DNA from: Basidiobolus meristosporus CBS 931.73
Taxonomy: Eukaryota; Fungi; Basidiobolomycota
Assembly (NCBI GenBank): GCA_002104905.1
Contig: MCFE01000091.1
Span: 112,313-176,312 of the forward strand
Reading direction: 5' to 3'
DNA: 64,000 nucleotides
Part shown: positions 14,270 through 63,778 of the stretch, piece after piece
How positions within the stretch are numbered: position 1 is the stretch's first letter
Layout: each line of letters begins with the position of its first letter
Made by a program: the position numbers and the translations under genes
The notes under the pieces: generated by a model
Told to the model about the DNA's origin: nothing
Seen by the model: only the letters and a program-made list of their open reading frames with translations
The model's database searches: none

Positions 14270-15841
14270 ATGCTGCCAGGAGAAGAAATGAAAAATCTAA
14301 TTAACAGAATTACCCTGCTGGTAGATGAGATGGAATCTGTGGGCATACCAACTAGTGATGAGGATGTAATAGTTACCATCCTGAATAGCCTGACAGACAA
14401 GTTTCAGGGCCTTGTATCAGCCCTAGAGTCCAGAACTGAAGATTTGACCTTAAATTACGTATATGGAAGGCTCCTGGATGAAGAATTAAGAAAAACAAGC
14501 ACCAATAAGAAGGAAGAAGAAAATGCTTTAATAAGCAATGATAACCAACAAAGGAGGTACCCAAGACCCTACAAAGGCAACAGCAACCTGTTTTGTAACT
14601 ACTGCAAAAGGAAAGGACACACATCAGACCGGTGTCTCAAAAAGAGAGATTATCAGCAAAAGAAGCCTGAATATGGAAATGCTGCAACAACTGAAGATAG
14701 ACTATTCATATCTGCACTAAATATGACCACAAACAAGGATTCTCAGACGTGGTATATTGACTCTGGAGCTTCTCAACACTTTACACAACAAAAAGAACTT
14801 TTTACCCAATATCAAGAAATTCCAATTAAGAAGGTTTTCATGGGTGACAATAGAACACTTGATGCAGTGGGAGAAGGAACTATCCAAGTAAACCTTAGAA
14901 ACAGTGAAGGAAGCCATACACTGACCTTTAAAGAAGTACTCTATGTACCAGAAATAGCCAAGAACCTACTCTCTGTAAGCAAGGCCACAGCAGAAGGACT
15001 CAGTTTTAGTTTTGACAATTCTGGATGCAGGATCACTGATCAAAATGGTGCTCATATTGCTTTGGGCATCAGAGATCAGAATCTATACAAGCTGACTTAT
15101 ATTCCATCATATCTGGAAGCCAATATAAGTAACTTAAATGAAGAAACATCAATGCTTTGGCACAGGAGATTTGGACACATTAATTTTGATTATTTGCGTA
15201 AAATGATCAAAGATCAGCTAATTTCTGGAGTGAAAATTGATCCCCCAGCTAATTTGGAGCACTGTGAAGCCTGCATATATAAGAAACAAGCCAGACAACC
15301 ATTCAAGAGCTCTGGGTTAATCAAAACTAAGAAAAAATTAGATCTAATTCACTCAGATCTGTGTGGACCTATGCAAAATTTATCCTTAGGCAGGATGAAG
15401 TATTTAATCACTTTTATTGATGATTATACAAGATACACATGGGTCTACTTCATGGAGAGAAAGGAAGAAGCTTTGTCTAAGCTCAGGGAGTTTAAAGCCA
15501 TGGTGGAGAGAGAAACTGGTGAAAAAATCAAGAAAATACGCTCTGACAATGGTAGAGAATATACCTCAAAACTCTTCATCCACTTCTGCAAAATTCATGG
15601 GATAAAGCAAGAGACTACTGTACCATACTCCCCACAGCAAAATGGAGTAGCAGAACAAGCTAACAGATCAATAATTGATATGGCAAGATCTATGATCCAT
15701 GATCAAAATTATCCTATGATTTTTGGGCGGAATCAGTTGCCACTGCTGTATACCTTAACAATAGGAGTTATAACGGAATACTTTGTGATTCTACTCCATT
15801 TGAAGCATGGTATGGATACAGACCAAGTGCAGAACATCTAA
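14270..15841 (+). CDS. Copia gag-protease-integrase polyprotein segment (523 aa, frameshifted at the 3' end)
   Basis: Zinc knuckle, DSGA protease, GAG-pre-integrase (LWHRRFGH) and rve DDE motifs. Confidence 0.9.
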   Translation: MLPGEEMKNLINRITLLVDEMESVGIPTSDEDVIVTILNSLTDKFQGLVSALESRTEDLTLNYVYGRLLDEELRKTSTNKKEEENALISNDNQQRRYPRPYKGNSNLFCNYCKRKGHTSDRCLKKRDYQQKKPEYGNAATTEDRLFISALNMTTNKDSQTWYIDSGASQHFTQQKELFTQYQEIPIKKVFMGDNRTLDAVGEGTIQVNLRNSEGSHTLTFKEVLYVPEIAKNLLSVSKATAEGLSFSFDNSGCRITDQNGAHIALGIRDQNLYKLTYIPSYLEANISNLNEETSMLWHRRFGHINFDYLRKMIKDQLISGVKIDPPANLEHCEACIYKKQARQPFKSSGLIKTKKKLDLIHSDLCGPMQNLSLGRMKYLITFIDDYTRYTWVYFMERKEEALSKLREFKAMVERETGEKIKKIRSDNGREYTSKLFIHFCKIHGIKQETTVPYSPQQNGVAEQANRSIIDMARSMIHDQNYPMIFGRNQLPLLYTLTIGVITEYFVILLHLKHGMDTDQVQNI

Positions 15842-16747
15842 GAATATTTGGGTGTACAGCATATGCCAAAAAACTGGCCGGAAATCAGTCAAAATTTGAG
15901 CCAAAAAGTGTAAAATGCATATTGTTGGGCTATTGCAATGAGAGTAAGGCATACAGACTCTACAATACCAAAGCAAAGAAGCTTATCAAGTCCAGGGATG
16001 TGTTGTTTGATGAAAATTCAAAATTTTCACAAAAAATGACATCAGATGATGACAAAAATTTGATCTCAAGTCCACCAATTGTCATGATTGAATCAGAGCA
16101 AAACAATGAAAATTCTTTCACTCCAGAGGACTCAACAACCATGGTTCAGCCAGAATCAGTGCCCAGGAATATCCCAGAAGTGATCATTCCAGTATCAAAT
16201 GCCTGGAGATCAAATCGGACAAGAAATAGCCCAAATTACTACATCAATGAGGGTACAAACTTAGCCTATGCCTATTCAGTCCATATTGATGAACCCCAGA
16301 CTGTAAAAGAGGCCCTAAATAGCCCTCAGACAAAGTTTTGGAGATCTGCAATGACTGAGGAATATCAGGCACTGATGGAAAATCAAACTTGGGACTAAAT
16401 CAAATTACCAATCAACCAAAAATCAATTGGATGCAGATGGGTCTTCAAGACAAAATACAAGGCTGATGGTACAATTGAAAGATACAAAGCAAGACTTGTA
16501 GCCAAAGGATACTCTCAAACAAAAGGACTTGACTATACTGAGACGTTTGCACCGGTAGCCAAGTTTAATTCCATCAGATTAATTTTGGATATTGCAGCCA
16601 AATATAAGTTTTTTATTCATCAAATGGATGTAAAAACTGCATTTTGAATGGAGAACTTGATGAGGATGTTTATATGGACCAGCCTGATGGGTTTGTTGAC
16701 CAAAATAACCCCCATTTGGTCTGCAAGCTTAAAAAGTCACTATACGG

Positions 16748-17552
16748 TGTGGTAGGGTAAACATACCTCCCACAGACAAATTTATTCATATAGTCATTAT
16801 GATATACTTATCCATATTTTATCTTATCAGTATTATCCCGTTCTTCTTTTGCCCATATTATCAGTATTATCCCCATATGATGTTTACCCTGATTAGTTAT
16901 TAGCATTAGTTATCCCAGATGTTATTCAGCTTTGTGATCAGTAGATGTATCTATATAAGGCAAGTACCCGCGTCAGTACCTGTGACACATGACCTAGGTT
17001 TGTGTTACCATCCCTACCATTTCAATACCATTTATGGTATTTCTATGTTGCACAGGTTTCAGACTACTGATTCCTGATTGGTTGAGAGTGCTGTGCCTTT
17101 TAGAACCTTCCTGGACATTCTTGGCATATTTTTTAGCTCATAGTGATGTCATCAAGAATTCCACTGATACCTAGAATCTTCTAGAACCTTGTCATTAGTA
17201 ATCACTTGGCAATCAGGAAAAGTATTTAAGGGAAAGCAATCCCTCATCAATAAATCATCCCTTCTATCAGTAACACTTCTCCCTTATTGATTAGCAGTTG
17301 ATCACTGCACCTGCCTTCAACAGTACATCTCAGACCTGCCATCAAGGAGCTTTTCAAGGTAGTGTACAAGACACACAGAGGCCTTTGGAGACACTTGGAG
17401 CACCTAGGAAGCTAGAGAAGCAGGAGCTTTTACTATAGAGACATACTGACAAAGACACCAGCAGTTTAGACCCAGAGGTTATTGCACCCATCAGACACCT
17501 CACACACCTTGAGTTGTGTAGCTTCTCCCAGGAGTACCTCTACACCACCACA
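16748..17552. mobile_element. 805-bp insertion (probable solo LTR of another family) inside the Copia RT
   Basis: Termini TGTGGT...ACCACA (6-bp inverted repeat); flanks ACGG/ACAG (4-bp TSD with one CpG-type change); excision restores SLYGLKQSP. Confidence 0.85.
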
Positions 17553-17602
17553 ACAGTCTCAAACAATCACCAAGAGCCTGGAATTGCAAGATAGATTCTT
17601 AT

Positions 17603-18451
17603 TTGGAATCTTTGAGTTTCAAAAGGAGTAATGCTGACTATAGTACATACTATAAGCCAGATAGAGCAAATCCAGTTCTATTAGCTCTATGTGTGGATGA
17701 TCTTATTATAGCCGCCAATAACCTGGAAACATTGGAAGAAACTAAATCCAGACTATCTAAGGAGTTCAAGATGTCTGATTTAGGAGAACTTAGTTTCTAC
17801 TTAGGGATTAAGTTCTCCATAGACAGAAGTACCCAGACTATCACCCTAAGCCAATCCAAGTATATTCAAGATATACTAAAGAAGTACAAAATGGAAGACT
17901 GTAAACCGGCAGCTACCCCAATGGAGACAAACCTTAGCTTGGTCAAAACTCAACCAAATCAAGAGAGCTTGGTGCCATCTGAAAGCCCTGACTTTCCTTA
18001 TCAATCTATGGTCAGCAGTCGGATGTATATCATGCTTGGAACACGTCCAGATATCTCATATTCAGTGGGAGTTGTCAGCCAACATAATCAGAACTATGGA
18101 TCTGATCATATTGCAGCAGTTAAGCGGATTTTGAGATACCTAAAAGGAACTGCTGATATCTGCTTAAGATACACTTATAAGGATTCAGAACAGGACCTTG
18201 TGGGATACTCTGATGCTGATTGGGGACAAAATTTGGAAGACAGAAGATCCACCACAGGATACACCTTTCTTTACTGTAAAGGAGCAATTTCATGGAATTC
18301 AAGAAAGCAACCAACCGTAGCACTTTCTACTACAGAGGCAGAGTTTATGGCAGCCTGTGAAGCTACAAAAGAAGCAATGTGGTTAAGAAAACTCTTTACA
18401 GATTTAGGCCTATGTCAAAAAACACCTATTACTTTATTTCAAGATAATTGA
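17603..18451 (+). CDS. Copia RT 3' half and RNase H
   Basis: LCVDDLI, TRPDISYSVG, YSDADWG, STTEAEF motifs. Confidence 0.9.
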   Translation: MESLSFKRSNADYSTYYKPDRANPVLLALCVDDLIIAANNLETLEETKSRLSKEFKMSDLGELSFYLGIKFSIDRSTQTITLSQSKYIQDILKKYKMEDCKPAATPMETNLSLVKTQPNQESLVPSESPDFPYQSMVSSRMYIMLGTRPDISYSVGVVSQHNQNYGSDHIAAVKRILRYLKGTADICLRYTYKDSEQDLVGYSDADWGQNLEDRRSTTGYTFLYCKGAISWNSRKQPTVALSTTEAEFMAACEATKEAMWLRKLFTDLGLCQKTPITLFQDN

Positions 18452-21400
18452 GGATGTATACAATTAGGTAGAAATCCAACTTTCATGCTAGAACCAAGCA
18501 CATAGATATTAGACATCATTTCATATGTGAATCTATAGAGAATAACTTAGTTAGCTTAGTTTACTGTCCTACAGATGAAATGATTGCAGACATATTTACC
18601 AAACCATTAGCTAGAGACAAATTTGAATATCTTAGGTCAAATTAGGGCAGGTCAGTATGAGCATTTAGCTGAGTGGGAGTGTTGTAAAAATTTGTATTTC
18701 CACCTAAATATTCACTTAACTTAGTCACTTAGAGCATTACCTTCAATTCCTAGAGAATACTGACCAAATTCTATGTGGGGATTTACTTAGAATATTTTCA
18801 CCAACATACCAGGTACCCAGAACATGAAAATTCTCAAAGTTGTCCAAACAGCCCCAAACTTTGCACACATGTTCCTGGGACCTTCCTTAACCTATTCTAC
18901 GTGTTTGTAATGCCAAGATCAGGTAAAAGTATAAATACTACTTTTACATTCAATAAATCATTAAGTGAAAACCACATAATCTACTTGTTCTCCCAATCAC
19001 TTCCAATATCTCCAAGACTCTTACAACAGATAACACACTGTACAGTTGGAATGTACTTGTCCCAATTCTACTTGATACCTCTGATAGATTTCCTGATGAA
19101 GTTCACTGATGTCCGAACATGTCTTTCAGCAAGTCCATTAGCCTTGGGATGATAGGGAGTCATCAGCCAGTGGCCAATGGTGCTATTCTGGCAAAGGGCT
19201 TTGATCATGTGATTCACAAATTCTGTTCCATTATCCAATTGAATGACCTTGGGGAATCCAAATAGGCAGAAGAGCTTGAATAGTTCTTGTGCAATTGTGG
19301 CAGCATACTTGTCTGGGATAGCTTTGAAGAAGATAAACGTGTGCAGACATCCGCAATCATAAAGAGGTGGTGATTGTCATCATCACTGGTGGTGAAAGGG
19401 CCTGCTAGATCAATTGCAATATGATCCATAGGAAGGCTTGTATGGATGGGACTCAAAGGGTGAAATCCATGGCAGCTGATATTGTAAAGTTGACATTCTC
19501 TGCAAGACTTGATAAACTCTAGGCAGTCAGCTTTGTTGTTTGGCCAATAATATCCATCAGAGTGTAGCTTCTTTGTAAGTATGTCAGCTCCAAAGTGGCC
19601 AAGTAAATGACTCTTCTGTATCAATGTTTTCCTTTCATTGGCTTGCAGGATTTTTAAAGTTGCTGAATTCAGTTGAGGAATTATTTTGGAAGCTGTAGTG
19701 AGCTTACTGATTATGTCAGTAATCACATGTCTCTCCCAAGGTGAAGTTGGGAAAAGTCTTGAAAGGTGGTAAGGCAGGATGTTGAGGATTCTGGAGCAAT
19801 GAATAACTGTATGGTCATAATCAAGTAGAGTATTAGGCCAGTTGGTGAGCATTGGAGTCAGAGTCTTTTGATTGTAAATGTAGACAAGGCTTGATGGTCA
19901 GTATACAAGGTAAGCAGATTACCATTTAAGTACTGATGAAACTTCTTTAAGGCAAAGACAATAGTAAGTAGCTCCTTCTTGGTGGCAGAGTAGTTTCTTT
20001 CAGCAGATTGTAGTGATCAGGCTTGAAAAGAGATCCAGTGAGGCAGATTTTGGTCTTCATCCTGGTATAGGACAGCCCCTAACCCAGCATTAGATGCATC
20101 TGTAGCAACAACAAAGGTCTTGGTAAAGTCTGGGTTGGATAGGGTGGGTGCTTGTGGGAGCAACTGGCAGAGTGACTCAAATACTTGATCATGAACCTTG
20201 TTCCAGGCTGAGGGAAGACCAGAACTATGGCATAATGCATCCAAAGGGGCACTCAAAGAGGGCATGAGAGGAATGTATTCCCTGAAATAATTGAATACTC
20301 CAAGATAATGATGCAGTTGCTTAGCGCTAGTGGGTTTTGGCCATTCAGGAATATTGACCAGTTTGAAAGGGTCAAGTTGATGGCCATCTGGTGTGACTAT
20401 GAATCCAAGTAGATTGATTTTGAGGCAAGCAAAACTGCACTTTTCAGCATTAAGAATCAGTCCAGTGGCTGTCAGTCTATTGATGACATCAATGACATGA
20501 GTTACATGATCATCACAGCTTGTAGAAAATATGATGATGTCATCAACATATACTAAGGTGTATGGTGCATTCTGGAGTATTTTAGTAATGACACTCTGAA
20601 ACTTGCTGGAAAGTGTCTTTAGGCCAAAGGGAGCTCCCTGAAACATCCATTGCATATTATTCCAAGTAAAGGCAGTCTTATACTGATGATTAGGATGGAT
20701 CTGGAATTGGTGATATGCATCCTTCAAGTCCAATTTAGAAAATACTTTTGTGCCTGATGGTGAGGAAAAGATATCCTGGATTCTTGGAACTGGAAATATA
20801 TCATTTTGGATAAGTTTGTTCAGAGGTCTAGGGTCCAAACAGGGTCTCTTCAGAGTTAGATTTCTATTTGTATCCTTCTTGGGTGCAAGCCTCAAAGGGC
20901 TGTTGAGTGTTGTGTTGACTGGGGCTTGAGTGATAATTCCACTGTCAGCCCACTTTTGGACTATTTCATCAACTAAGTGTTGACAAAAATGTGGAATGGG
21001 GTATTGCCTCCTCTATGATGACTCACCAGGTGGGGTTTCTAGCGTAACAATGGATTCTGGAATAGTGCAGAAACTGTTCCTAGGATGGTGTAGAGTTTTT
21101 CTCAGGACAGGCTGGTGATCTATGTCCCATCTTTCCACATTAAAAGCATTTGTCATCAGCATATGGATTATCAGTTTTGGCATTTTGCTGCTTTTCTGAC
21201 GTGTTTCCTGACTTGTTTGACTGCTCAGTGATGCCTTTGCATTCACTAGTAGAGTGATAGCATCTTCCATGAAGCTCACAATGCTTTGTAGTGGTTGACT
21301 TCTTCTTGGTCACATGACTGCTCTCTTTTCTGGTTGTTGCTGCATCTTGAGTGGAGTTGCCTGAAGCCTGGCTAACAGCCGCAGTCATGGTGATTGCAAG

Positions 21401-22274: not shown

Positions 22275-23030
22275 TTGCATCCAAAAGAAAAGTGCAATAA
22301 ACCCTTGAATGAGTTAACTGAACCTGAGCAACAACTAAGTGCAGAATCTTAGAATTGTCAAGGGTTATAGAAATATTAGCAGAGAAGTTCTGGTCTAATA
22401 GTGGCTTTGTATATAGTTGAGTTGGGCTATAAAGGCAACAGAGTTGGTTGGCCATAGAGGCTAGGCTTGGTGTTTTTGGGAATGCTATATATGCTAGGCT
22501 TGGGTAGAAACTAGAACAAAATTGTTGAATTCTTAGTTTTGCAGAGGCACAATCTTAATTTTGTTGAGATACACACTAAACCAAAAGGTTTAGGAAGCTT
22601 TATTTATACTTTTCCAATCAAGTTGAATTAGTAAGCACCAAGACACTGGACTAATTGAAATCTGTTGGGGTGTTGATAGATGCATAGGATAAATGAAAAT
22701 TTGCATCATTAATTGGCTGATGTCTTGGCAACTGCTAAGTGGTTGGATAGATTGCAGATGACTAATCACTTGGAAAGGCTTAGCAGATTAGTTGAGGACA
22801 TAATGACCACATGAAAATTGATCAGGTGTGACAGCTAAAAATAGATTCTGAGAAGTGATAAAATAAAGCATAACTGGGATTAGTTATGTTTGGGATTGGG
22901 AAGATCAGTTAGGGTACTAGATTTTCTAATGGAGTAAAATAGGTTAAGTATTAAGTGTTGATGCACAACACTGCTGGTTGTACTGAATGTCAAAGCAAGC
23001 TGTTATTCAACTGCTCTTCTGTGGCTGTTG
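22275..23030 (-). repeat. Dispersed repeat family D, longest copy
   Basis: High nucleotide similarity to 24010-24680 (same strand), 28850-29285 (opposite strand) and 59873-60181; no intact ORF. Confidence 0.8.
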
Positions 23031-24009: not shown

Positions 24010-24680
24010 TATCCAAGAGAAAAGTGTAGTTAAACTCTTGAATGAGTTAGCTGAAACTATGAGACAACTATTTGCAGAACCTCAGAATTGTCAAGAGTGA
24101 CAGAAATACTAGTAGAGAGGTTCTGGTCTAATATTGGTCTTGTATATAGCTGAGTTGGGCTATAAAGGCAACAGAGTAGGTTTGCTATGCAGGCTAGGCT
24201 TGGTGTTCTTGGGAGTGCTAAACATGCTAGGCTTGAGTAGAAACTAGAGTGGAATTGTTAATTTCTTAACTTTGGTGAGACACACACACTAAACAAAAAG
24301 GTTTAGGAAGCTTTATTTATACTTTTCCAATCAAGTTGAATTAGTAAGCACCAAGACACTGGACTAATTGAAATCTGTTGGGGTGTTGATAGATGCATAG
24401 GATAAATGAAAATTTGCATCATTAATTGGCTGATGTCTTGGCAACTGCTAAGTGGTTGGATAGATTGCAGATGACTAATCACTTGGAAAGGCTTAGCAGA
24501 TTAGTTGAGGACATAATGACCACATGAAAATTGATCAGGTGTTACAGCTAAAAATAGATTCTGAGAAGTGATAAAATAAAGCATAACTGGGGTTAGTTAT
24601 GTTTGAGTTTGGGAAGATCAGTTAGGGTACTAGACTTTCTAACAGAGTGAAATTGGCTGAGTTTTAAATATTGATGCACA
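24010..24680 (-). repeat. Dispersed repeat family D copy
   Basis: Near-identical to 22290-22960 over several hundred bp. Confidence 0.8.
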
Positions 24681-28849: not shown

Positions 28850-29285
28850 ATGACTAGTCCCAGTTATAGTTTATTTTATCATTTCTCAGAATCCATTTCA
28901 ATTAATCCAATCTCTTGGTGCTTACTAACTCAACTTGATCAGAAAAGTATAAATAAAGCTGACTGAACCTTTTGGTTTAGTGTGTGTCTCAACAAAATTA
29001 AGATTGTGCCTCAGCAAAATTAAGAATTCACAATTTCATTCTAGTTTCTACTCATGCCTAGCATATCTAGCACTCCTATGAACACTAAGCCTAGCCTGCA
29101 TAGCAAATCAACTCTGTTGCCTTTATAGCCAAACCCAGCTATATACAAGACCAATATTAGACCAGAATCTCTCTGCTAATATTTCCACCACTCTCTGACA
29201 ATTGCTAGATTCTGCTCTTGGTCGTCTCTTATGTTCAGTTAAACCATTCAAGAGTTTTGTAGCACTTTTCTCTTGGGATACAATA
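28850..29285 (+). repeat. Dispersed repeat family D copy (inverted)
   Basis: Reverse complement of the 22290-22660 and 22870-22920 segments. Confidence 0.75.
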
Positions 29286-35872: not shown

Positions 35873-36007
35873 AAACCCTACCTATTACCGTGCTACATCC
35901 AGATTACCATGGGACTCACCCCCAACGGCACCCTAACCCTAACCCTAAGTCGAAATCAAAGCGTCATTGAACAAAATCCAGGCTAGGAACGAGATCACCC
36001 CTAACCC
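35873..36007 (+). promoter_or_regulatory. Cluster of telomere-like motifs upstream of RPL37
   Basis: AAACCCTA 35873-35880, (CCCTAA)3 35931-35948, CCCTAACCC near 35999-36007. Confidence 0.6.
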
Positions 36008-55218: not shown

Positions 55219-56046
55219 TCTAGAGGCTGATGACGATGATGGGAAACAGGCAAGGCGGGATTTTATAAGTTCCATTGTTTTTGGCCAACAAACCACTTGG
55301 TCTGTTTAGGTTAAATCCTTCCTAGTCTATTACCAAAACCATCCACCGATTTTCGCGATCCACAAGGCACCAAGCGGGTCTCCTTGCGCCGGTGTACGCG
55401 ACTTTTAACCGGGAAAACCGTGCACAGCTAGTTCACCTCATTGTTTACCATATCCCCTCCTTTGTTCTCGCGTTGATCTATGCGTTGTTTCGTGTCTTCC
55501 GTTTCCATGCTGGTAAGTTCCGAACCGCAGCGCGACCGAAAAGGAGCCCGATCCTACACCATCATCCCCGGCTGTCTCGAGTGTAAAACACCGCTGTTGT
55601 GGACGCAATAATATAAATCATTTCCAAAGGGTATGGGCACTCTTAAGCTGGTTGTGGTGGGTGATAATGCTCAAATCAAAGATCGCACCTCTGCGGTTAG
55701 CATTATCGTGAATACGACACAAATGCTCCAATCTACCATTCCCGCAAGCTACCCTCGTGGTAAATACCAGGTAGAGGCGGGTAAGAAACAGTCTTGTGGG
55801 GAGGATTTCCGCCAAGAAGCGAATTTCTATATTGGACTGCGCTGAAGGTGTCTAACCTCATGGATAATATAATACAACCGATTTGGAGCAAACAGAAACC
55901 GGTTTGGGCGAAAGCCGGCAGCCATGGTAGAGGGAACGGGTTGATTGGTCGTAGCATGGATTTTCTAGGTTTCGGAGGTCAAAATTATAAAAGAGCTGCG
56001 CACCCCCTCTATCTCGATTCATCCAAACCTCTATCCTTTCTAATCA

Positions 56047-56958
56047 ATGTCCAAGAAGCCATCTTCATCCACTCAGTCTGAGGCCTTGACCACTCAGCCA
56101 AGTAGCCATGTAATGTCCAAGTCTTTTGCCAAAGAAATCCCAGCAGAGCCAGTCGCGGGCTTCTACGGGGTTGCCATGCAATCCCTGGGAAATTTATTTG
56201 GGGCCCTTGGCTCTATTCCTGGGTGTTTCTGCTGTCCAAATCCCAACAAGGAGGTGGATCAAGGCTATGTTGGTCTGGTCTCTCGTTTCGGCCGAGTCTA
56301 CAAATGTGTGGATCCAGGTCTGACCACAGTGAATGTCTTTACCGAGAAACTGCATAGCGTTGATATCAAGTTGCAGATCGCTTTGATCGAGGACATTCGC
56401 ATCATGACCAAGGACAATGTAAACATCAAGATCGATTCGGTGGTTTACTACCATGTAGTGGACCCTTATCAATCATTATTCGGAGTTGGCGACGTTCGCC
56501 AGGCTCTAATTGAGCGTACACAAACCACACTCAGAGGGGTTCTCGGAACTCGAGTTCTCCAAGACTGTATTGAGAATCGAGAGACCATTGCTGATGACAT
56601 CCGTGAGATGATCGATATTCCAGCCAGAGAGTGGGGAGTCACCATCGAATCCATCCTGATTAAGGATCTTGAGTTCTCCAAGGAGCTACAGGAGTCGCTT
56701 TCCAGCGCAGCCACCCAAAAGAGAATCGGTGAATCGAAGGTGATTTCCGCCCAAGCCGAAGTGGACTCGGCCAAGTTGATGAGAGAGGCGGCGGAGATTC
56801 TCAACACTCCAGCAGCCATGCAGATTCGTTATCTCGAAACCCTGAGCTCAATGAGCAAGAACACGGGAACCAAGGTGATTTTCATGCCACTTGAGCATGG
56901 TTCTAGTAGCAATGCTATCCACAAGGCAGTGGTTCAAAATCAATTGGCCGAAATGTAA
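56047..56958 (+). CDS. Stomatin-like SPFH/Band 7 protein
   Basis: MTKDNVNIKIDSVVYY, QTTLRGVLG, EWGVTIESILIKD, AMQIRYLETL. Confidence 0.95.
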   Translation: MSKKPSSSTQSEALTTQPSSHVMSKSFAKEIPAEPVAGFYGVAMQSLGNLFGALGSIPGCFCCPNPNKEVDQGYVGLVSRFGRVYKCVDPGLTTVNVFTEKLHSVDIKLQIALIEDIRIMTKDNVNIKIDSVVYYHVVDPYQSLFGVGDVRQALIERTQTTLRGVLGTRVLQDCIENRETIADDIREMIDIPAREWGVTIESILIKDLEFSKELQESLSSAATQKRIGESKVISAQAEVDSAKLMREAAEILNTPAAMQIRYLETLSSMSKNTGTKVIFMPLEHGSSSNAIHKAVVQNQLAEM

Positions 56959-57399
56959 ATCGTTTATTGATTGTGCTATACCCCTCGTAATGTTCCTGTT
57001 TGCCATTTTGTAAGCATGTACAACTACATAGTCCTAATACATATCCCAACATCAATTTATAAAATTTCACTGCTTCTATAACATGCTAGAATTAGCTGCT
57101 TCTATAACATGCTAGAATTCGTTACTGTTGGTTATTGTGCACGTTTCTTAAAATCCAATTCTGGCTTATGATTCGCCCTACACATGAGAGAACGGTTGAC
57201 AATTGTATATGCCAGATTCGTCGATCAATCACCTTTATCGATCACCACCTCAATATTAGATTCAAATGGTGCCAATTACCAGATATATAACAGCGCCACT
57301 CAGCTGGCCACTCGACTGGCCAATAGGTGGCCCAAGACACATTGATATGGATGGTTATGGGTTAATCGAGAATACCGGTTATCCAATGATATCATATAT

Positions 57400-57753
57400 A
57401 GAACCCCGGTATTAGAGCATTTGCCAGATCCAAGCCACTTCTTCAGATTTGCCAAGCAATGCTTGAACCCAGAATCCGGAAAACTGTTCATCTCAAACAT
57501 GCATCTCAATATGGGTGACGCGACAAGCGCTGGTTTTTATAATCCTAACACCGGGGAAAAAGTTTTGAGCTACTCCGCCAATCACTCAGCTCAGAACCTA
57601 ATCGAACAGGCCGAGGGGTGTGGGTTCATCTTTCTGGAGAAATTTGAAGATGGCGTGGAAGACGCTGCCCATGCCGAGAGATTGAACCTGAGAGCAAAGA
57701 AGTGGGTGGGTGTCAACATGTTGCTATCCTTGGTATTCGGCCTCCGTAATTGA
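57400..57753 (+). CDS. C-terminal part of a class I SAM-dependent methyltransferase-like protein; upstream exons not resolved, possibly a pseudogene
   Basis: VLEHLPD..LFISNMH..MG..SAGF.NP.TG.K..RAKKWVGV resembles fungal methyltransferase-11-like proteins. Confidence 0.5.
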   Translation, partial: RTPVLEHLPDPSHFFRFAKQCLNPESGKLFISNMHLNMGDATSAGFYNPNTGEKVLSYSANHSAQNLIEQAEGCGFIFLEKFEDGVEDAAHAERLNLRAKKWVGVNMLLSLVFGLRN

Positions 57754-58475
57754 ATCCTTACTTAGATGTTTGTATTGTACTCTAATAAATATTCATCCAT
57801 AAACGTTCATCTATCTGGTCTTTTCAATGTCGTTGAAGTAGTTTGGATACTCGTGTATACACTTGAAAGTGCGTTGTTTGGTACATTATTAATAAATAAA
57901 ATGCCCAACTAAAGCGACGTAAGAGTAAGGTACTCCGCATGATTCAAGTTGCGGGAGAGTAGGTTTTGTTGCTGGTGGCAGCGCTGGGTAGGCAAAATAT
58001 TGGTGAAATGCAAAGAAATCCTCCAACACTGATTTAACATTGGTTTGATGATCTCCAAGTCCTTGGTGACAATTGGTGACAAACTATATAATCCCAACAC
58101 TCAAAGCTCCAAAAATTCTTAGTATTCATGCGTACGATATAGGTAGTTTGACCAAAGTTTATCTAATTGGCAGCAATGGTAAGATTGAAGAGATATTTTT
58201 GGCTGACTGAAGTATATACTCCATCGATGCATTATATTCAAAAGTATATGATATAAGATATGTACCGGAGGGTGGCCAATGAAATGCTCAACTTTTATCC
58301 TGATAGATCTACTGTGCACTAGAATTTTGGCTGGGATGAGCTAGACATTGCAAGAGTCTTGGAGAAATTGAAGTGATTGCAAGCACACGTAGGTTTTAAG
58401 ATTTAAATTATCTATTTATCAAATGTGATGGTGGTATATATATGTCATGTAAAAAATGGTCAGGAAGGTCCAAAG

Positions 58476-58806
58476 TGTTGTAAAAATTTGTAATTCCACC
58501 TAAATATTCACCTAACTTAGTCACTTAGATCATACCTTCAGATCCTAGAGAATACTGACCAAATTCCTTGTCAGGATTTACTCAGAATATTTACCCAGAA
58601 CATGAAAATTTGATAAGTTGTCCAAACAGCCCCAAGCTTTGCACACATGTTCTTGGAGCCTTCCTTAACCTATTCTACATGTTTGCTATGCCAAGACCAT
58701 GTAAAAGTATAAATACTACTTTTACATTCAACAATTCAACAAGAGAAGCCACATAATCTACTTGTCCGCCCAAATCACTTCCAATATTTCCAAAACTCTT
58801 ACAACA
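58476..58806 (+). mobile_element. Solo Copia LTR (internally deleted) inserted into an older inverted LTR remnant (about 58340-58832)
   Basis: TGTTG..CAACA; flanks CAAAG/CAATG; the interrupted ggaaggtcc/aacatgtgtg LTR sequence resumes after the insert. Confidence 0.8.
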
Positions 58807-58867
58807 CAATGAACATGTGTGTAAAGCTTGGGGCCCTCTGAATCAATGGTGATTCTTGGCTGATACC

Positions 58868-59215
58868 TGTTGTAATATTCTGAGGAGTATTAGAAGTGAT
58901 GTGGAGAACCAGAAGATTTACATGTAATTCACTTGTAGATTTATTGATCAAAAGTATGTTATATATACTTTCAGTAGAGTAGAGCAAACAAACATGTAGA
59001 GTTTGCTAAGGAAGGTCCCAAGAATATGTGCGCCAAGTTTGGGGGCTTTTGGACAACTTTGAGAAAGATCATAATCTGGGTACCTGATAATTGGGTAAAA
59101 ATATTCTAAGTAAATCCCAACAAGTAATTTGGTCAGGACAGAATGCTAATCAAAGAGTAAGATCTATGTGACTAATCTAGCATGAATATTTTGGTGACAA
59201 CTTAAAATTACAACA
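58868..59215 (-). mobile_element. Solo LTR (second subfamily, 348 bp) with TSD ATACC
   Basis: TGTTG..CAACA; ATACC at 58863-58867 and 59216-59220. Confidence 0.88.
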
Positions 59216-59511
59216 ATACCATGCATTCATTCTGTTTCTGTACTCTAGTAAATCACAGGATAATTGCCCAAGTAATACTAATATGCCATGGTTCACTGTT
59301 CCATATCACTTGAAGATATGTTAGCCAATGTGAGAAAAGGGTGTCACCAAATGTGCAGTGGTGAGTAATATCCAATAGGTGCTTGTTGTGCCACAACATT
59401 CTTGTAATGAGAGACATGCATTGTAATATCTAATGTGAGGAAGGAAGGTTTATTTACCCAAATTGCAGATAGAACAATCAAGGGGAAGGAAGCAAATTAG
59501 GAGAAGGTTAT

Positions 59512-59854
59512 GGGAGAGACAGCTATAAATAGGTGAAATTTTTTCCAGCTGAAACAAAGAAGCCAGCACTAATGTTGTAACCTTGATACAAGATGTGTAG
59601 CTGAGGGGTATTGGTAGATCAGTTAATAAGAAGTGATGATAGTTCTTCAGTGCTCAAGACACTATTCAGTGGGAAAGGGGGGAGCAAGAGGGGTAAGAAT
59701 GATTTGCAAACAACATTAATAAGAGAAATATGATAGGGATTGATATTCATCATAAAGGGAGTGTGCTGTTTCAGATATTGCTGCCAAAGGTCTGTCAAAT
59801 ATTTCAGGTAGGCCAGTTTGGGTTTTCTGACTTCACAATATATTGAGCAAACTT
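59512..59854 (-). mobile_element. Subtelomeric module C, older degenerate copy
   Basis: Homologous to 61309-61655, with a decayed 3' tail; followed by GGTTAGGTTAGGGGGG. Confidence 0.8.
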
Positions 59855-59872
59855 AAGGTTAGGTTAGGGGGG

Positions 59873-60181
59873 AGATGGTCACTGCTATATCCAAGAAAAA
59901 AGTGTAATAAAACTCTTGAATGAGTCAACTGAACCTAAGTGACAACTAAGCACAGAATCTTAGAATTGCCAAGAGTGACAGAAATATTAGCAGAGAAGTT
60001 TTGGTCTAATATTAGTTTTGTATATAGTTCAGTTGGGCTAAAAAGGCAACAGAGTTGGTTTGCTATACCGGCTAGGCTTGGTGTTCTTGGGAATACAAGA
60101 TATGCTAGGCTTGGGTGCAAACTAGAATGGAATTGTTGAATTCCTAATTTTGCTGAGGAACAATCTTAATTTTGTGGAGAC
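59873..60181 (-). repeat. Repeat D copy within the subtelomeric array
   Basis: Similar to 22275-22570; its minus-strand 3' end GTGACCATCTCCCC resembles the module C tail and abuts a TTAGGG linker. Confidence 0.7.
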
Positions 60182-60182
60182 A

Positions 60183-60799
60183 GGGGAGGGAAAGTCACCC
60201 AGGGAGGTGAAATCTTTATTTGATTTCAGACTAGTCTAACTACAAATAAAGAAGCCAGCTGGGTATAGAAGATTCCCAAAGTAAACACTAAGTTGAATAT
60301 GAATTATTCTAAGCTAAAGTTAAGGCAGTATTGCAGAGTACACTGGAGTTCAGGATCATGGGGGAGTGAAGTGGATAAGCTTGAGAGATATAATAATCTT
60401 TGAGGAAGTGGATAACTGCAGGTGAAGGGGAGCTTTTGATAAGTGGAGTGAGTCTTGAGATCAGAGATTCCTCTAATGAGAAGGTCTTGTAAACTGGAGA
60501 ATCAGGAAACTCTTTAAAGGCATGATCAGTAGGTTCCAAGCAAAATTGGTCAGACACATTTTGAGAGAATTGTTTGGCAATATTTTTGTCAAGTACTACC
60601 TCCAGAGTATGATTGTTGATAAATCTCATGTTAACAATCCTGGATAAATTGTAACCTGGTTGCTTGAGATACATCCTATGCTCAGATATAGCAATAAACT
60701 CCACAATGGCAAAGTGGCAGACAGCCCAGCCAGTAGCAGGAGGCAACTCAGAAGTGGCAGGAAACTTTCTTTTAGTCTTTGTAGGAGCAGCAGTATGTC
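60183..60799 (-). mobile_element. Subtelomeric module B, 5'-truncated (ORF 60309-60799)
   Basis: Homologous to 62889-63503; open frame with the same C-terminus (..TALTLA*); shared 3' tail. Confidence 0.85.
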
Positions 60800-60807
60800 T
60801 TAGGGGG

Positions 60808-61295
60808 AGGAAAGTCACCAAGTGGTGAAATCTTTATTTACTTATGACAAGTATCTAAAGAAGCCAAGTTAATTTGAAGTAATTCCTAGAAAGCTAGGTC
60901 TGAGAGTTGAGAAGCTGAGTGGTACTATATTTCCTAGTTAGCTAGGTCTGAGAGAGGTTTCCTGGAAAGCCAGGCCTGAGAAGTGAGAATCTGAATATAT
61001 CTGAGCTAAGTTATACTGGTTTGCGGTAGCTGGATTGTGGCCGGAAAGGCCAGTAGACTGGGGGAACTGAGATGAATTTCTGGGCGATCACTGGCCAAAT
61101 TTACTAGGCAAATCTGGCCATTAGCATTTCAAGGATTTCAGCCAATCAGAGCCTTTACTTTGCCCGATGGTTGATCAAGCCATCTCCCAATGAGCACACA
61201 TCAATTTATTAATCAAATTTTTGCTGGATCCAGGATTTGAACCCACAACCATGGGTATGGAAGGGTTAGGGATAACCACAAGGCTAAGTGTTCTT
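60808..61295 (-). ncRNA. Module A copy 1 (488 bp): tRNA-headed SINE-like structured RNA
   Basis: A-box and B-box at the 5' end, shared 3' tail, 29-bp deletion of one hairpin repeat relative to copies 2 and 3. Confidence 0.7.
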
Positions 61296-61308
61296 GGGTT
61301 AGGGGGGG

Positions 61309-61824
61309 AGACAGTCACCAACCGGTGAAATCTTTATTTCAGTTGAAACAAAGAAGCCAGCGCTACTGTTGTAGCTTTGATACAAGAGTGTGTAGCTGAG
61401 GGGAATTTGTAGGTAAGTTAATAAGAAGTGATGATAGTTCTTCAGTGCTCAAGACACTGTTCAGTGGGAAGGGGGGTAGCAAGAGAGGTAGGAATGACTT
61501 GTGAACAACATTAATGAGGGGAATGTGATAAGGATTGATATTCATCATAAAGGGAGTGTGCTGCTGCAGATATTGCTGCCAAAGGTCTGTCAAGTACTTC
61601 AGGTAGGCCAGCTTGGGTTTTTCTGACTGCAGAATATAGTGAGCAAACTTCTTGACTTCAGGATCTCCAAGTATAGTTCTCCAGCAGGAGTCAGGTGTAG
61701 TGTGGTGTGTTCTCTTCCAGGCCTTAATCAGTGGGTTGTTGCAGTTGTGAAGTCTGAGGTATAATCTGGTTCTAAGGTAGAGAAGTCTGATCTTATAGGG
61801 CATAAACCCAAAAGCACCAAGAAT
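61309..61824 (-). mobile_element. Subtelomeric module C, 5'-truncated; ORF open from the truncation point to a stop at 61363 (putative C-terminus of an RT-type ORF)
   Basis: About 153 open codons (ILGAFGFMPYKIRLLYLRTRLYLR..); 54-nt 3' UTR consisting of the shared tail; identity as an RT C-terminus is inference. Confidence 0.6.
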
Positions 61825-61831
61825 TTAGGGG

Positions 61832-62349
61832 AGGAAAGTCACCAAGTGGTGAAATCTTTATTTACTTATGACAAGTATCTAAAGAAGCCAAGTTAATCTG
61901 AAGTTATTCCTAGAAAGCTAGGTCTGAAAGATATCTTCCTGGTAAGCCAGGTCTGAGAGTTGAGAAGCTAAGTGGTACTATATTTTCCTAGTTAGCTAGG
62001 TCTGAGAGAGGTTTTCCTGGAAAGCCAGGCCTGAGAAGTGAGAATCTGAATATATCTGAGCTAAGTTATGCTGGTTTGCGGTAGCTGGATTGTGGCCGGA
62101 AAGGCCAGTAGACTGGGGGAACTGAGATGAATTTCTGGGCAATCACTGGCCAAATTTACTAGGGAAATCTGGCCATTAGCATTTCAAGGATTTCAGCCAA
62201 TCAGAGCCTTTACTTTGCCCGATGGTTGATCAAGCCATCTCCCAATGAGCACACATCAATTTATTAATCAAATTTTGCTGGATCCAGGATTTGAACCCAC
62301 AACCATGGGTATGGAAGGGTTAGGGATAACCACAAGGCTAAGTGTTCTT
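61832..62349 (-). ncRNA. Module A copy 2 (518 bp)
   Basis: Near-identical to copy 3; bounded by TTAGGG-containing linkers. Confidence 0.7.
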
Positions 62350-62362
62350 GGTTAGGGGGGGG

Positions 62363-62879
62363 AGGAAAGTCACCAAGTGGTGAAATCTTTATTTACTTAT
62401 GACAAGTATCTAAAGAAGCCAAGTTAATCTGAAGTAATTCCTAGAAAGCTAGGTCTGAGAGATATCTTCCTGGTAAGCCAGGTCTGAGAGTTGAGAAGCT
62501 GAGTGGTACTATATTTCCTAGTTAGCTAGGTCTGAGAGAGGTTTCCTGGAAAGCCAGGCCTGAGAAGTGAGAATCTGAATATATCTGAGCTAAGTTATAC
62601 TGGTTTGCGGTAGCTGAATTGTGGCCGGAATGGCCAGTAGACTGGGGGAACTGAGATGAATTTCTGGGCAATCACTGGCCAAATTTACTAGGCAAATCTG
62701 GCCAATTAGCATTTCAAGGATTTCAGCCAATCAGAGCCTTTACTTTGCCCGATGGTTGATCAAGCCATCTCCCAATGAGCACACATCAATTTATTAATCA
62801 AATTTTGCTGGATCCAGGATTTGAACCCACAACCATGGGTATGGAAGGGTTAGGGATAACCACAAGGCTAAGTGTTCTT
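62363..62879 (-). ncRNA. Module A copy 3 (517 bp)
   Basis: A-box TAGCCTTGTGG (62860-62870) and B-box GGTTCAAATCC (62817-62827) on the minus strand; no TTTT on the sense strand. Confidence 0.7.
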
Positions 62880-62888
62880 GGTTAGGGG

Positions 62889-63778
62889 AGGGAAAGTCAC
62901 CAAGGTAGGTGAAATCTTTATTTGATTTCAGACAAGTCTAACTACAAATAAAGAAGCCAGCTGGGAATAGAAGATTCCCAAAGTAAACACTAAGTTAAAA
63001 ATGAATAAATCTAAGCTAAAGTTAAGGCAGTATCCCAGAGTACACTGGAGTTCAGGTTCATGGGGGAGTGAAGTAGATAAGCTTGAGAAATATAATAATC
63101 TTTAAGGAAGTGGATAACAGCAGGTGAAGGGGAGTTTTTGATAAGTGAAGTGAATCTTGAGAGCAGAGATTCCTCTAATGAGAAGGTCTTGTAAACTGGA
63201 GAATCAGGAAACTCTTTGAAGGCATGGTCAGTAGGTTCCCAGTAAAACTGGTCAGAGACATTTTGAGAGAATTGTGTTGCAATACTTTTGTCAAGTACTA
63301 CCTCCAGAGTGTGATGGTTGATAAATCTCATGTTAACAATTTTGGATAAATTGTAACCTTGTTGCTTGAGATACATCCTATGCTCAGATATGGGAATAAA
63401 CTCCACATTGGCAAAGTAGCAGACAGTCCAGTCAGTAGCAGGAGTTAAATCAGAATTGGCAGGAAACTTTCTTTTAGTCTTGGGAGGAGCAGCAGCATGT
63501 CTTGAGGGAGCAGGAACAGGCTTTTTGACAGCTTCAGAGTAGGAAGAGTGAGCAGGAGCAGGTGATTCTTGGGGAGTCTTGTTGACAGGAAGAGTTGGCA
63601 CAGGGACAATAGATTCTTGCAGATCAGAAAAGGCAGAGAACAACTTTTGAACTTGTTTCTTGAGTAGAGCATTTTCAGCTTCAACAAGTGCAAGCCTTTC
63701 CTCAAGGAAGGAAATCTGAAGGGAATGGAGTGAAGGCATAAGATATAAGAAGAAGAGGGTTGGATGGGGTGGGTGGGT
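62889..63778 (-). mobile_element. Subtelomeric module B, terminal copy, capped directly by the telomere
   Basis: Single 242-aa ORF plus the shared 3' tail; its 5' end runs through (CCCA)n into (CCCTAA)n. Confidence 0.85.
63011..63739 (-). CDS. 242-aa gag/ORF1-like protein (coiled coil, Pro-rich linker, globular C-terminal domain)
   Basis: Heptad stretch EERLALVEAENALLKKQVQKL; SYSEAVKK; conserved block FIPISEHRMYLKQQGYNLSKIVNMRFI also open in the 60309 copy; function is inference. Confidence 0.65.
   Translation of the reverse strand: MPSLHSLQISFLEERLALVEAENALLKKQVQKLFSAFSDLQESIVPVPTLPVNKTPQESPAPAHSSYSEAVKKPVPAPSRHAAAPPKTKRKFPANSDLTPATDWTVCYFANVEFIPISEHRMYLKQQGYNLSKIVNMRFINHHTLEVVLDKSIATQFSQNVSDQFYWEPTDHAFKEFPDSPVYKTFSLEESLLSRFTSLIKNSPSPAVIHFLKDYYISQAYLLHSPMNLNSSVLWDTALTLA

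Follow-up and report, generated by a model that had tools for sequence, protein, structure and literature searches.

The right-hand end of a 64,000-nucleotide (nt) stretch of the genome of Basidiobolus meristosporus CBS 931.73 (contig MCFE01000091.1, positions 112,313 to 176,312; the whole stretch is called the window below) carries an array of eight repeat units at window 59512-63778, all on the minus strand and in the order C′-D-B-A-C-A-A-B, followed by the telomere. With a probability of roughly 0.78, this array is a terminal stack of a telomere-specialised retrotransposon family without long terminal repeats (non-LTR) together with elements that depend on it. The units A, B and C end in the same 3′ tag; C is the end of a long interspersed nuclear element (LINE), A is a non-coding unit resembling a short interspersed nuclear element (SINE), and B carries a single open reading frame (ORF) of the ORF1 type. 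The array was delimited by direct sequence reading, a repeat finder and BLAST with the single modules, which gave the following features.

59512..59855, minus strand: C′, an old, 5′-truncated copy of the LINE 3′ end with a decayed tail; the most proximal unit
59856..59873, plus strand: junction GGTTAGGTTAGGGGGG, two telomere-like units and a G-run, found by direct sequence reading
59874..60181, minus strand: D, the 3′ part of a longer dispersed repeat, fused to the last ~20 nt of the tail (…GTGACCATCTCCCCCCTAA)
60182..60812, minus strand: B, 5′-truncated, B positions 263-893, 92% identity
60804..61297, minus strand: A, an older SINE-like copy, 93% identity to A positions 2-525
61302..61825, minus strand: C, the last 524 nt of the LINE, C positions 4043-4565
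61826..62352, minus strand: A, full-length (527 nt), non-coding; box-like motifs in the head, four hairpin repeats of ~30 nt, and the tail common to A, B and C
62357..62882, minus strand: A, a second full-length copy, 98% identity to the adjoining A
62886..63778, minus strand: B, full-length (893 nt), ORF1-only, 5′ end CCCACCCACCCACCCACCCC…, ORF at 63011-63739, 3′ shared tail
62886..62960, minus strand: an example of the shared 3′ tag, with hairpin 1, hairpin 2, then CUUUCCCU-CCCC-UAA
63779..64000, plus strand: terminal (TTAGGG)n, ~37 units up to the last letter of the window, where contig C1268 also ends

The order of the modules, their head-to-tail polarity with the 3′ ends toward the centromere, and the telomeric cap are thus as an earlier note, made from the letters alone, had read them. 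The units are joined by C-run/TAA(CCC) junctions: on its own strand each ends in 4-8 C, then TAA and often CC(C), and the plus strand reads …TTAGGGG… at these places. Three units are 5′-truncated, and neither poly(A) nor target-site duplications were seen in the array, the latter being invisible inside a repeat; the earlier note had likewise remarked on truncated units without such duplications. The proximal units are 88-93% identical to their reference copies and the distal ones 98-100%. At the proximal end, C′ matches C positions 4217-4563 at 88% identity, and its tail remnant corresponds to the repeat-finder family D7. The ORF of the truncated B is still open, with no stop in the 170 codons kept, and the older A has one internal ~30-nt repeat fewer. 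The C unit at 61302..61825 contains the C-terminal 146 codons of ORF2, the 3′ untranslated region (UTR) and the tail; its ORF is the end of the ORF2 found in the full-length copy at locus L004, and more than 40 other copies of this unit occur at 99-100% identity.

Three partners with one 3′ tag

The tag shared by A, B and C is a two-hairpin sequence of ~75 nt, followed by C(4-11)TAA. In all three tails AAATAAAGATTTCACC is followed by a loop of 4-6 nt, then by GGTGAC and, after some bases, by the C-run and TAA. The loop is family-specific: C has TGTT or GGTT there, A has ACTT and B has TACCTT. D has only the last ~20 nt of such a tail. When each tail was folded, hairpin 1 (UCUUU…AAAGA) was formed by (G)CUUCUUU… pairing with …AAAUAAAGA, and because of this pairing an apparent AAUAAA sits inside the stem. 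Hairpin 2 consists of UCACC-loop-GGUGA. Both hairpins are kept across eleven aligned tails from different families and species, and the alignment contains three compensatory pairs, among them the change of UCACC/GGUGA to ACACC/GGUGU in Basidiobolus ranarum. The end of the tag (the C-run and UAA(CCC)) is complementary to the telomeric G strand. Searched across the 89.5-Mb genome, the core pattern of the tail gave 1552 exact matches and its reversed control 0, far more than chance would give. The common 3′ signal that the earlier note had proposed for A, B and C is supported.

The same tag and the same head-to-tail layout were found in related LINEs from other samples (L027 and L028; 48-63% ORF2 identity), and L027 has three elements head-to-tail with CCCTAA units between them. 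A second isolate under the same species label contains diverged A-like sequence and conserved tails preceded by GGGTTA; C and B bodies were not found in it at ≥80% likeness. The tag outlives the element bodies. Motifs resembling the telomeric C strand are also present toward the 5′ ends, namely CCCACCCACCCACCCACCCC at the start of B (window 63750-63778), CCCTAACCC in the head of A (window 62847-62855) and AACCCTAACCCTAA in the 5′ UTR of C (L004:9570-9583), so that a finished complementary DNA (cDNA) would end G-rich. Such ends could seed telomerase or bind telomere proteins.

Judged by its sequence, C is an autonomous LINE of the apurinic endonuclease (APE) type, young and ~4.6 kb long at full length. 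A full-length, telomere-capped copy (L004 5164-9601) has an ORF1 of 511 amino acids (aa), which stops 16 nt upstream of an ORF2 of 917 aa. The earlier note had taken C for a putative reverse transcriptase (RT) end; the unit in the window is indeed the end of an RT gene, though not a lone module but the 3′ end of this ~4.6-kb element. In ORF1, which is intact in 7 of the 13 copies examined, a zinc-ribbon-like motif occurs together with a coiled coil and an RRM-like domain. The RT domain in ORF2 was recognised by Pfam (RVT_1, E 6.8e-25, residues 461-673), its best relatives of solved structure are L1 ORF2p (E ~1e-12), and beyond the family its nearest matches, at ~25-31% identity, are LINEs with Exo_endo_phos_2, of insects and others. 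The endonuclease region gave weak matches to Exo_endo_phos families (PF14529 at E 3.4e-4, below the curated cut-off), a profile built from it matches the human L1 endonuclease (E 3.8e-11), and its motifs N, Y, GDLN, D and SDH align with those of canonical LINE endonucleases. A C-terminal restriction-enzyme-like endonuclease was not found in C, for which Pfam gives EEP families and RVT_1 only.

The true 5′ end of C, CTCTTTAAATTAGTCAAC… (seen in twelve further copies), is followed by 1-3 tandem units of ~100 nt and the internal AACCCTAACCCTAA. These 5′ UTR repeats (CTCTTTAAATTAGTCAAC…TTTTTTCC) were seen in L016, L017, L021, L022 and L024, and the 5′ UTR has at least 40 copies (68 candidates) at 99-100% identity, which, like the intact ORF1 copies, speaks for activity of C. 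The truncation points of C are scattered along the element, which is without LTRs. At L006:3983-4220 there are two tandem mini-copies of C that comprise the last 115-118 nt only, matching the leftovers that abortive reverse transcription or early template switching would leave.

The earlier note had likened the array to the endonuclease-less Penelope-like elements Athena and Coprina, with gag, RT and an RNA polymerase III (Pol III) transcript split into separately moving units. The polarity of the array and its telomere-complementary 3′ ends fit such a multipartite system. However, the RT relatives of C are APE-type LINEs, its LINE-type ORF2 includes an APE/EEP-like domain, and the full-length copy carries ORF1 and ORF2 together; nor was a hammerhead ribozyme, a tRNA or any other credible Rfam family found (E up to 1 for the last 14 kb of the window, gathering scores for the whole of it). 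A Penelope-like identity is contradicted by this domain content, was rejected, and is regarded as highly improbable. Since full-length C has an ORF1 and an ORF2 of its own, the system would consist of one autonomous LINE and its non-autonomous partners.

A second telomere-ended LINE family, X, lies on the minus strand at L001:5610-10000 (contig C1018), where it is stacked upon a truncated copy of C. Upstream of its ORF2, which is 1015 aa long and has an RT and a canonical APE domain (…FLAETW…), lie two ORFs of 135 and 194 aa, and its 3′ end (…AATAAAAGAATTTAGACCCCTAACCCTAACCC) is without the shared hairpin tag and has its own CCCCTAACCCTAACCC end.

The first of the partners, B, is by all indications of its ORF an ORF1-only, non-autonomous relative of C. 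It is a discrete element of 893 nt, of which ~40 scored copies match positions 1-893 at 96-98% identity. Its ORF of 242 aa shares 35% identity with the 160 C-terminal residues of C ORF1 (E 3e-21), about the C-terminal half of that protein; the ORF1-like character of B that the earlier note had suspected thus holds, and its statement that the module bodies are unrelated does not hold for B and C. Pfam gave nothing useful on the B ORF or on the short C ORF, and the homology of B was seen only because it was compared with full-length C. Nine copies that differ by 4-8% keep the ORF without a stop, with pairwise dN/dS ratios mostly of 0.2-0.6. In an AlphaFold model (pLDDT 78) the protein has an N-terminal long helix or coiled coil, a disordered linker, a β-α-β-β-α-β domain and a helical end. 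The modelled β-α-β-β-α-β domain is RRM-like, matching many RRM domains with Z scores of 6-8.7 (VIA wide search), with no specific link to L1 ORF1p, and a Foldseek search of the model against the PDB gave no match at E up to 0.001. A B-like protein, 45% identical, is encoded in Basidiobolus ranarum AG-B5 (L032) by an element carrying the same tail. The B. ranarum element (L032:1-200) likewise begins with ~100-nt repeats.

The designation of A as a SINE-like unit is justified by its sequence: it is 527 nt long, has no ORF >49 aa, in agreement with the non-coding nature assigned to it by the earlier note, contains four ~30-nt hairpin repeats and shares its 3′ tail with C. A search of the genome with A gave ≥82 matches and 436 candidates at first look, their identity being 93-98%. 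A tRNA-derived Pol III origin is hinted at by box-like motifs in the head of A, where, by eye, TAGCCTTGTGG fits the A-box consensus TRGCNNAGTGG at 10 of 11 positions and, ~32 nt from it, GGTTCAAATCC fits the B-box consensus GGTTCGANNCC at 10 of 11 positions. No tRNA was recognised in the head by Rfam (E up to 10) or by ARAGORN, it folds no better than shuffled sequence, and a T-run terminator is absent from A. The Pol III transcription that the earlier note had assumed for A accordingly finds no counterpart beyond these motifs.

The possibility, raised in the earlier note, that A, B and C are adjacent parts of one long element shuffled by unequal recombination would agree with their always occurring together at chromosome ends. 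It is contradicted by the constant 5′ end that each of them has, A with (CC)AAGAACAC, B with CCCACCCACCC and C with CTCTTTAAATTAG, and by their separate tails. Further, they occur in every order with telomere units between them, and B matches from position 1 to 893 in ~40 scored copies and A from 1 to 525 in more than 50. A single composite A-B-C element was rejected on these grounds, and it is scarcely conceivable as an explanation.

The module D, which the earlier note had counted among the members of the system, turned out to be of a different kind. All its copies elsewhere (window 22279, 24010 and 28986; L005, L006 and L008) share a further stretch of sequence on the 5′ side; they stop at CTTGGATA and have no tail. 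D is a passenger, a piece of a longer dispersed repeat, possibly caught by a template switch. The repeat containing D also lies internally in the window at 22279-22569, 24010-24279 and 28986-29276, in both orientations, and the three internal copies are each preceded by the same tail-like sequence (…ATAAATAAAGCTTACTGAACCTTTTGGTTTAGTGTGT).

Arrays at chromosome ends and their growth

The tails are not spread evenly over the two strands of the assembly: 1429 of the 1552 (92%) lie on the minus strand of their contigs, and the telomere is thus almost always at the right end, a bias that probably comes from the assembler orienting contigs that end in a graph tip and not from biology. Tail matches occur on 29 of the first 96 contigs. 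Seven of the ten first-fetched loci run to a contig end whose last 100-220 bp are TTAGGG, the 5′ ends of all units pointing outward, and the arrays at the fetched loci mostly lie ≤10 kb from the contig ends. Every terminal array examined is capped by ~100-220 bp of TTAGGG, and a match to Telomerase_RBD above the cut-off indicates that a telomerase is encoded in the genome; a loss of telomerase is thus not supported, the earlier note having asked whether TERT is present. Basidiobolus as a genus is reported to have "about 60 to many hundreds" of small chromosomes (PMC3281927), which would account for very many array-bearing ends. Assembly redundancy as the source of the many arrays was rejected, the subtelomere of the window being unique: the first ~3 kb of window 55500-59400 were found once at 100% and elsewhere at ≤95%, on two contigs. 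Array-bearing contigs are often ~15-20 kb or ~165-176 kb long.

At 58 junctions between units the tail is followed by TAA and then by 0 (21 junctions), 1 (31), 2 (4), 3 (1) or 7 (1) further telomere units, and the phase of the repeat is identical at all 58. Junction tracts are longest, at 3.5 to 7 units, in four cases, and all four belong to the distal-most, youngest junctions. The identity of the units to young reference copies rises telomere-ward (Spearman -0.59, p 1e-4, n=37, including four self-matches). In Logan contigs of the source sample, more than 100 different 5′-truncation points are joined to the same three tail starts, the flanks ahead of the tails ending in GGGTTA, and unit order and truncation points differ among all arrays examined. 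The age gradient and the differing truncation points together indicate that new units were added distally, singly and over time, as is expected from the addition at the chromosome terminus that the earlier note had proposed.

Growth and spread of the arrays chiefly by recombination (break-induced replication or unequal exchange via interstitial repeats), with retrotransposition as a rare event, was weighed against this. Tandem A-A and A-A-A runs occur (window, L006, L016), the internal and inverted arrays at L007 and L008 are evidence of rearrangement, the short interstitial TTAGGG tracts are suitable sites of invasion, and the arrays of the fungal telomeric element MoTeR amplify in this way after telomerase loss (PMC8381367). 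Although the arrays are surely reshaped by recombination, as at L007, L008 and in the tandem A runs, the numerous private truncation junctions cannot be explained in this way: each of the more than 100 distinct truncation points is joined to an exact tail start. Unit order is different in each array examined, adjoining A copies differ by ~2% and junction C-runs differ in length, and neither the telomere-ward age gradient nor the intact ORFs under constraint would be expected. As the chief cause, recombination is therefore considered unlikely.

With the arrays read as terminal stacks of retrotransposed copies, a mechanism can be proposed whose RNA recognition resembles that of the stringent LINE-SINE pairs, in which the RT finds its RNA via a shared 3′ hairpin. 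The RT encoded by C would recognise the hairpin tag, in cis on its own RNA and in trans on transcripts of A and B, and the C-run/CCCUAA at the presumed 3′ end of these RNAs would pair with the TTAGGG 3′-OH of the G strand. This 3′-OH is the expected primer because the cDNA is continuous with the G strand and the RNA would end in its complement. Reverse transcription would then extend the G strand, so that each new copy comes to lie distal to the previous one and antisense on the G strand, often 5′-truncated and without poly(A) or a target-site duplication, and telomerase would afterwards rebuild the TTAGGG cap. The 3′-OH itself came somewhat more probably from an endonuclease nick in the proximal-most telomere repeats; a natural, critically short chromosome end is the less probable source.

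Several observations weigh against a telomere-specialised, endonuclease-bearing family of this kind. The catalytic Glu of the C endonuclease is replaced by Asp (LCLIDVQ), so that its predicted activity is uncertain; the change is common to the relatives P0001 and P0003, which are ~55% identical to C in the endonuclease region. The terminal tracts comprise ~32-37 repeats and nearly all junction tracts ≤1.5, and junction tracts so short compared with the terminal ones are not expected from random nicking within the telomere. The terminal location is an extrapolation to the whole genome from ~20 contigs of known extent, and at two loci, L007 (3764-8605) and L008 (2895-7505), the arrays are internal or inverted: at L007 two arrays face each other 3′ end to 3′ end, and at L008 the array lies ~97 kb inside a 218-kb contig. 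Possible explanations are former telomeres that became internal, fusions of chromosomes, or misassembly. The array sequence was found in no RNA run searched, and the C RT is assigned to the APE-type LINEs as a whole and not to a clade.

A possible, though less likely, alternative is that the same elements are added without the endonuclease. The CCCUAA would then pair with the natural 3′ G-overhang of a critically short or deprotected end, which the RT would extend in the manner of HeT-A/TART or Athena, as the earlier note had proposed. The RT may also pass serially from RNA to RNA, leaving one at its 5′ end and taking up the next at its 3′ end. Fifty-two of the 58 junctions have ≤1 further unit after TAA, though the terminal tracts are ~200 bp long, and tails abut unique DNA without TAA at L001 5062, L004 2895 and L010 2702. 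Consistent with such a route are also the joining of D to no more than the final ~20 nt of a tail, such as a template switch would produce, the Glu to Asp replacement, and the C-strand-like 5′ ends (B CCCACCCACCC, C 5′ UTR AACCCTAACCCTAA, A head CCCTAACCC) with the G-rich finished cDNA that they imply. However, an endonuclease domain with its other catalytic motifs intact has been kept in at least five lineages that have diverged by 45-55% in that region, and that of family X is fully canonical; the longest junction tracts (3.5 to 7 units) are at the youngest junctions, so that a repeat-free end would not be needed; and telomerase is present.

A broader picture, drawn tentatively and on balance doubtful, builds on this end-primed route. 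In a nucleus with very many small chromosomes, the LINE, the gag-only element and a truly telomere-specific SINE would together form a consortium that is added directly onto nearly repeat-free ends, with the end itself as the primer and the RT sometimes jumping between RNAs, and that would serve as a back-up for end maintenance beside telomerase. Were this so, an early-diverging fungus would have arrived, independently, at an intermediate between normal telomeres and the state found in Drosophila.

Comparison with known telomeric elements

To our knowledge, telomere-specialised retrotransposons are known only from insects, Giardia, Chlorella, rotifers and a few higher fungi. No description of the present telomeric LINE/SINE/gag-only family was found in the literature searched, nor one of a telomere-confined SINE and a gag-only partner beside telomerase. 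The array would thus add an independent APE-type case from an early-diverging fungus and on an unusual scale (~1,500 tails), with three types of partner side by side: an autonomous LINE, a gag-only element converging on HeT-A and a telomere-confined SINE. A single conserved tag of two hairpins links all three, in a genome that still encodes telomerase. The system opens a way to test how an RT picks its RNA and a telomeric primer, and how a telomere parasite may drift toward telomere maintenance.

HeT-A, TART and TAHRE are the telomeric LINEs of Drosophila and belong to the Jockey clade. They too form head-to-tail arrays with the 3′ ends centromere-ward, 5′-truncated and younger distally (PMC5537684). 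In addition, HeT-A is a gag-only, non-autonomous member beside an RT-encoding relative, TAHRE, with which it shares 3′ sequences, so that B stands to C as HeT-A to TAHRE. The Drosophila system differs in having neither telomerase nor TTAGGG repeats, and its elements have poly(A); in Basidiobolus, by contrast, telomerase is present, the arrays are capped by TTAGGG, the tail is telomere-complementary and the repeats have not been replaced.

TRAS and SART are LINEs of the R1 clade in the TTAGG telomeres of Bombyx, Tribolium and aphids (PMC10088271). Like C, they are of the APE type with ORF1 and ORF2, are inserted in a fixed repeat phase and orientation, and coexist with telomerase-type repeats; they differ in having poly(A) and in lying within long tracts of the repeat, and PMC10088271 lists neither a SINE nor an ORF1-only element dedicated to them. 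The array described here, in contrast, is without poly(A), has junction tracts of mostly ≤1.5 repeats and Asp in place of Glu, and resides in a fungal host. The 3′ UTR structure of SART1 is reportedly needed for recognition by its RT. Both this likeness to TRAS/SART (R1 clade) and that to the Jockey clade are functional ones, separate from any clade placement of the C RT.

Among fungi, MoTeR1/MoTeR2, FoTeR and Cnl1 are also inserted in TTAGGG telomeres, head-to-tail and with short telomere tracts between them, and they are alike as well in their pairing of an autonomous with a non-autonomous element, in shared termini, in 5′ tandem or telomere-like repeats and in internalised relics (PMC8381367; PMC12857005). 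The ~100-nt repeats in the 5′ UTR of C are reminiscent of mouse L1 monomers and of the repeats at the 5′ end of MoTeR/FoTeR. The elements themselves differ, MoTeR, FoTeR and Cnl1 being of the CRE/SLACS clade with a restriction-enzyme-like endonuclease (PMC12857005) and C having an N-terminal APE-type domain and an ORF1; a SINE partner is not described for them in PMC8381367 or PMC12857005.

The Penelope-like Athena/Coprina elements and the Terminons are alike in their telomere-complementary 3′ ends and in the same chromosome-end polarity, and differ in having another class of RT, no APE endonuclease and hammerhead motifs; these Penelope-like features were not found here. In the stringent LINE-SINE pairs, for instance UnaL2 and UnaSINE1 of the eel, the SINE carries the 3′ hairpin of the LINE and a short terminal repeat at which reverse transcription starts. 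Such pairs are dispersed, whereas here the pair, joined by an ORF1-only third member, occupies chromosome ends and has the telomere complement as its terminal repeat.

Sequence proximal to the array

Directly proximal to the array, at window 58474-59219, there are two inverted copies of a dispersed repeat of ~350 bp, which has very many copies in the genome at ~90% identity and the look of a miniature inverted-repeat transposable element. Ordinary genes occupy window 31-57 kb (malate dehydrogenase, two arrestin-domain proteins, GH18 and Band 7), and in a GC-rich gene region at window 35931-35948 three perfect CCCTAA units were found in the orientation opposite to that of the terminal tract. 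Further inside, window 14270-20895 contains retrotransposon ORFs of the copia type (gag, integrase, RVT_2) and of the gypsy type (RVT_1, RNase H), and window 20-28 kb has a positive GC skew, like the array.

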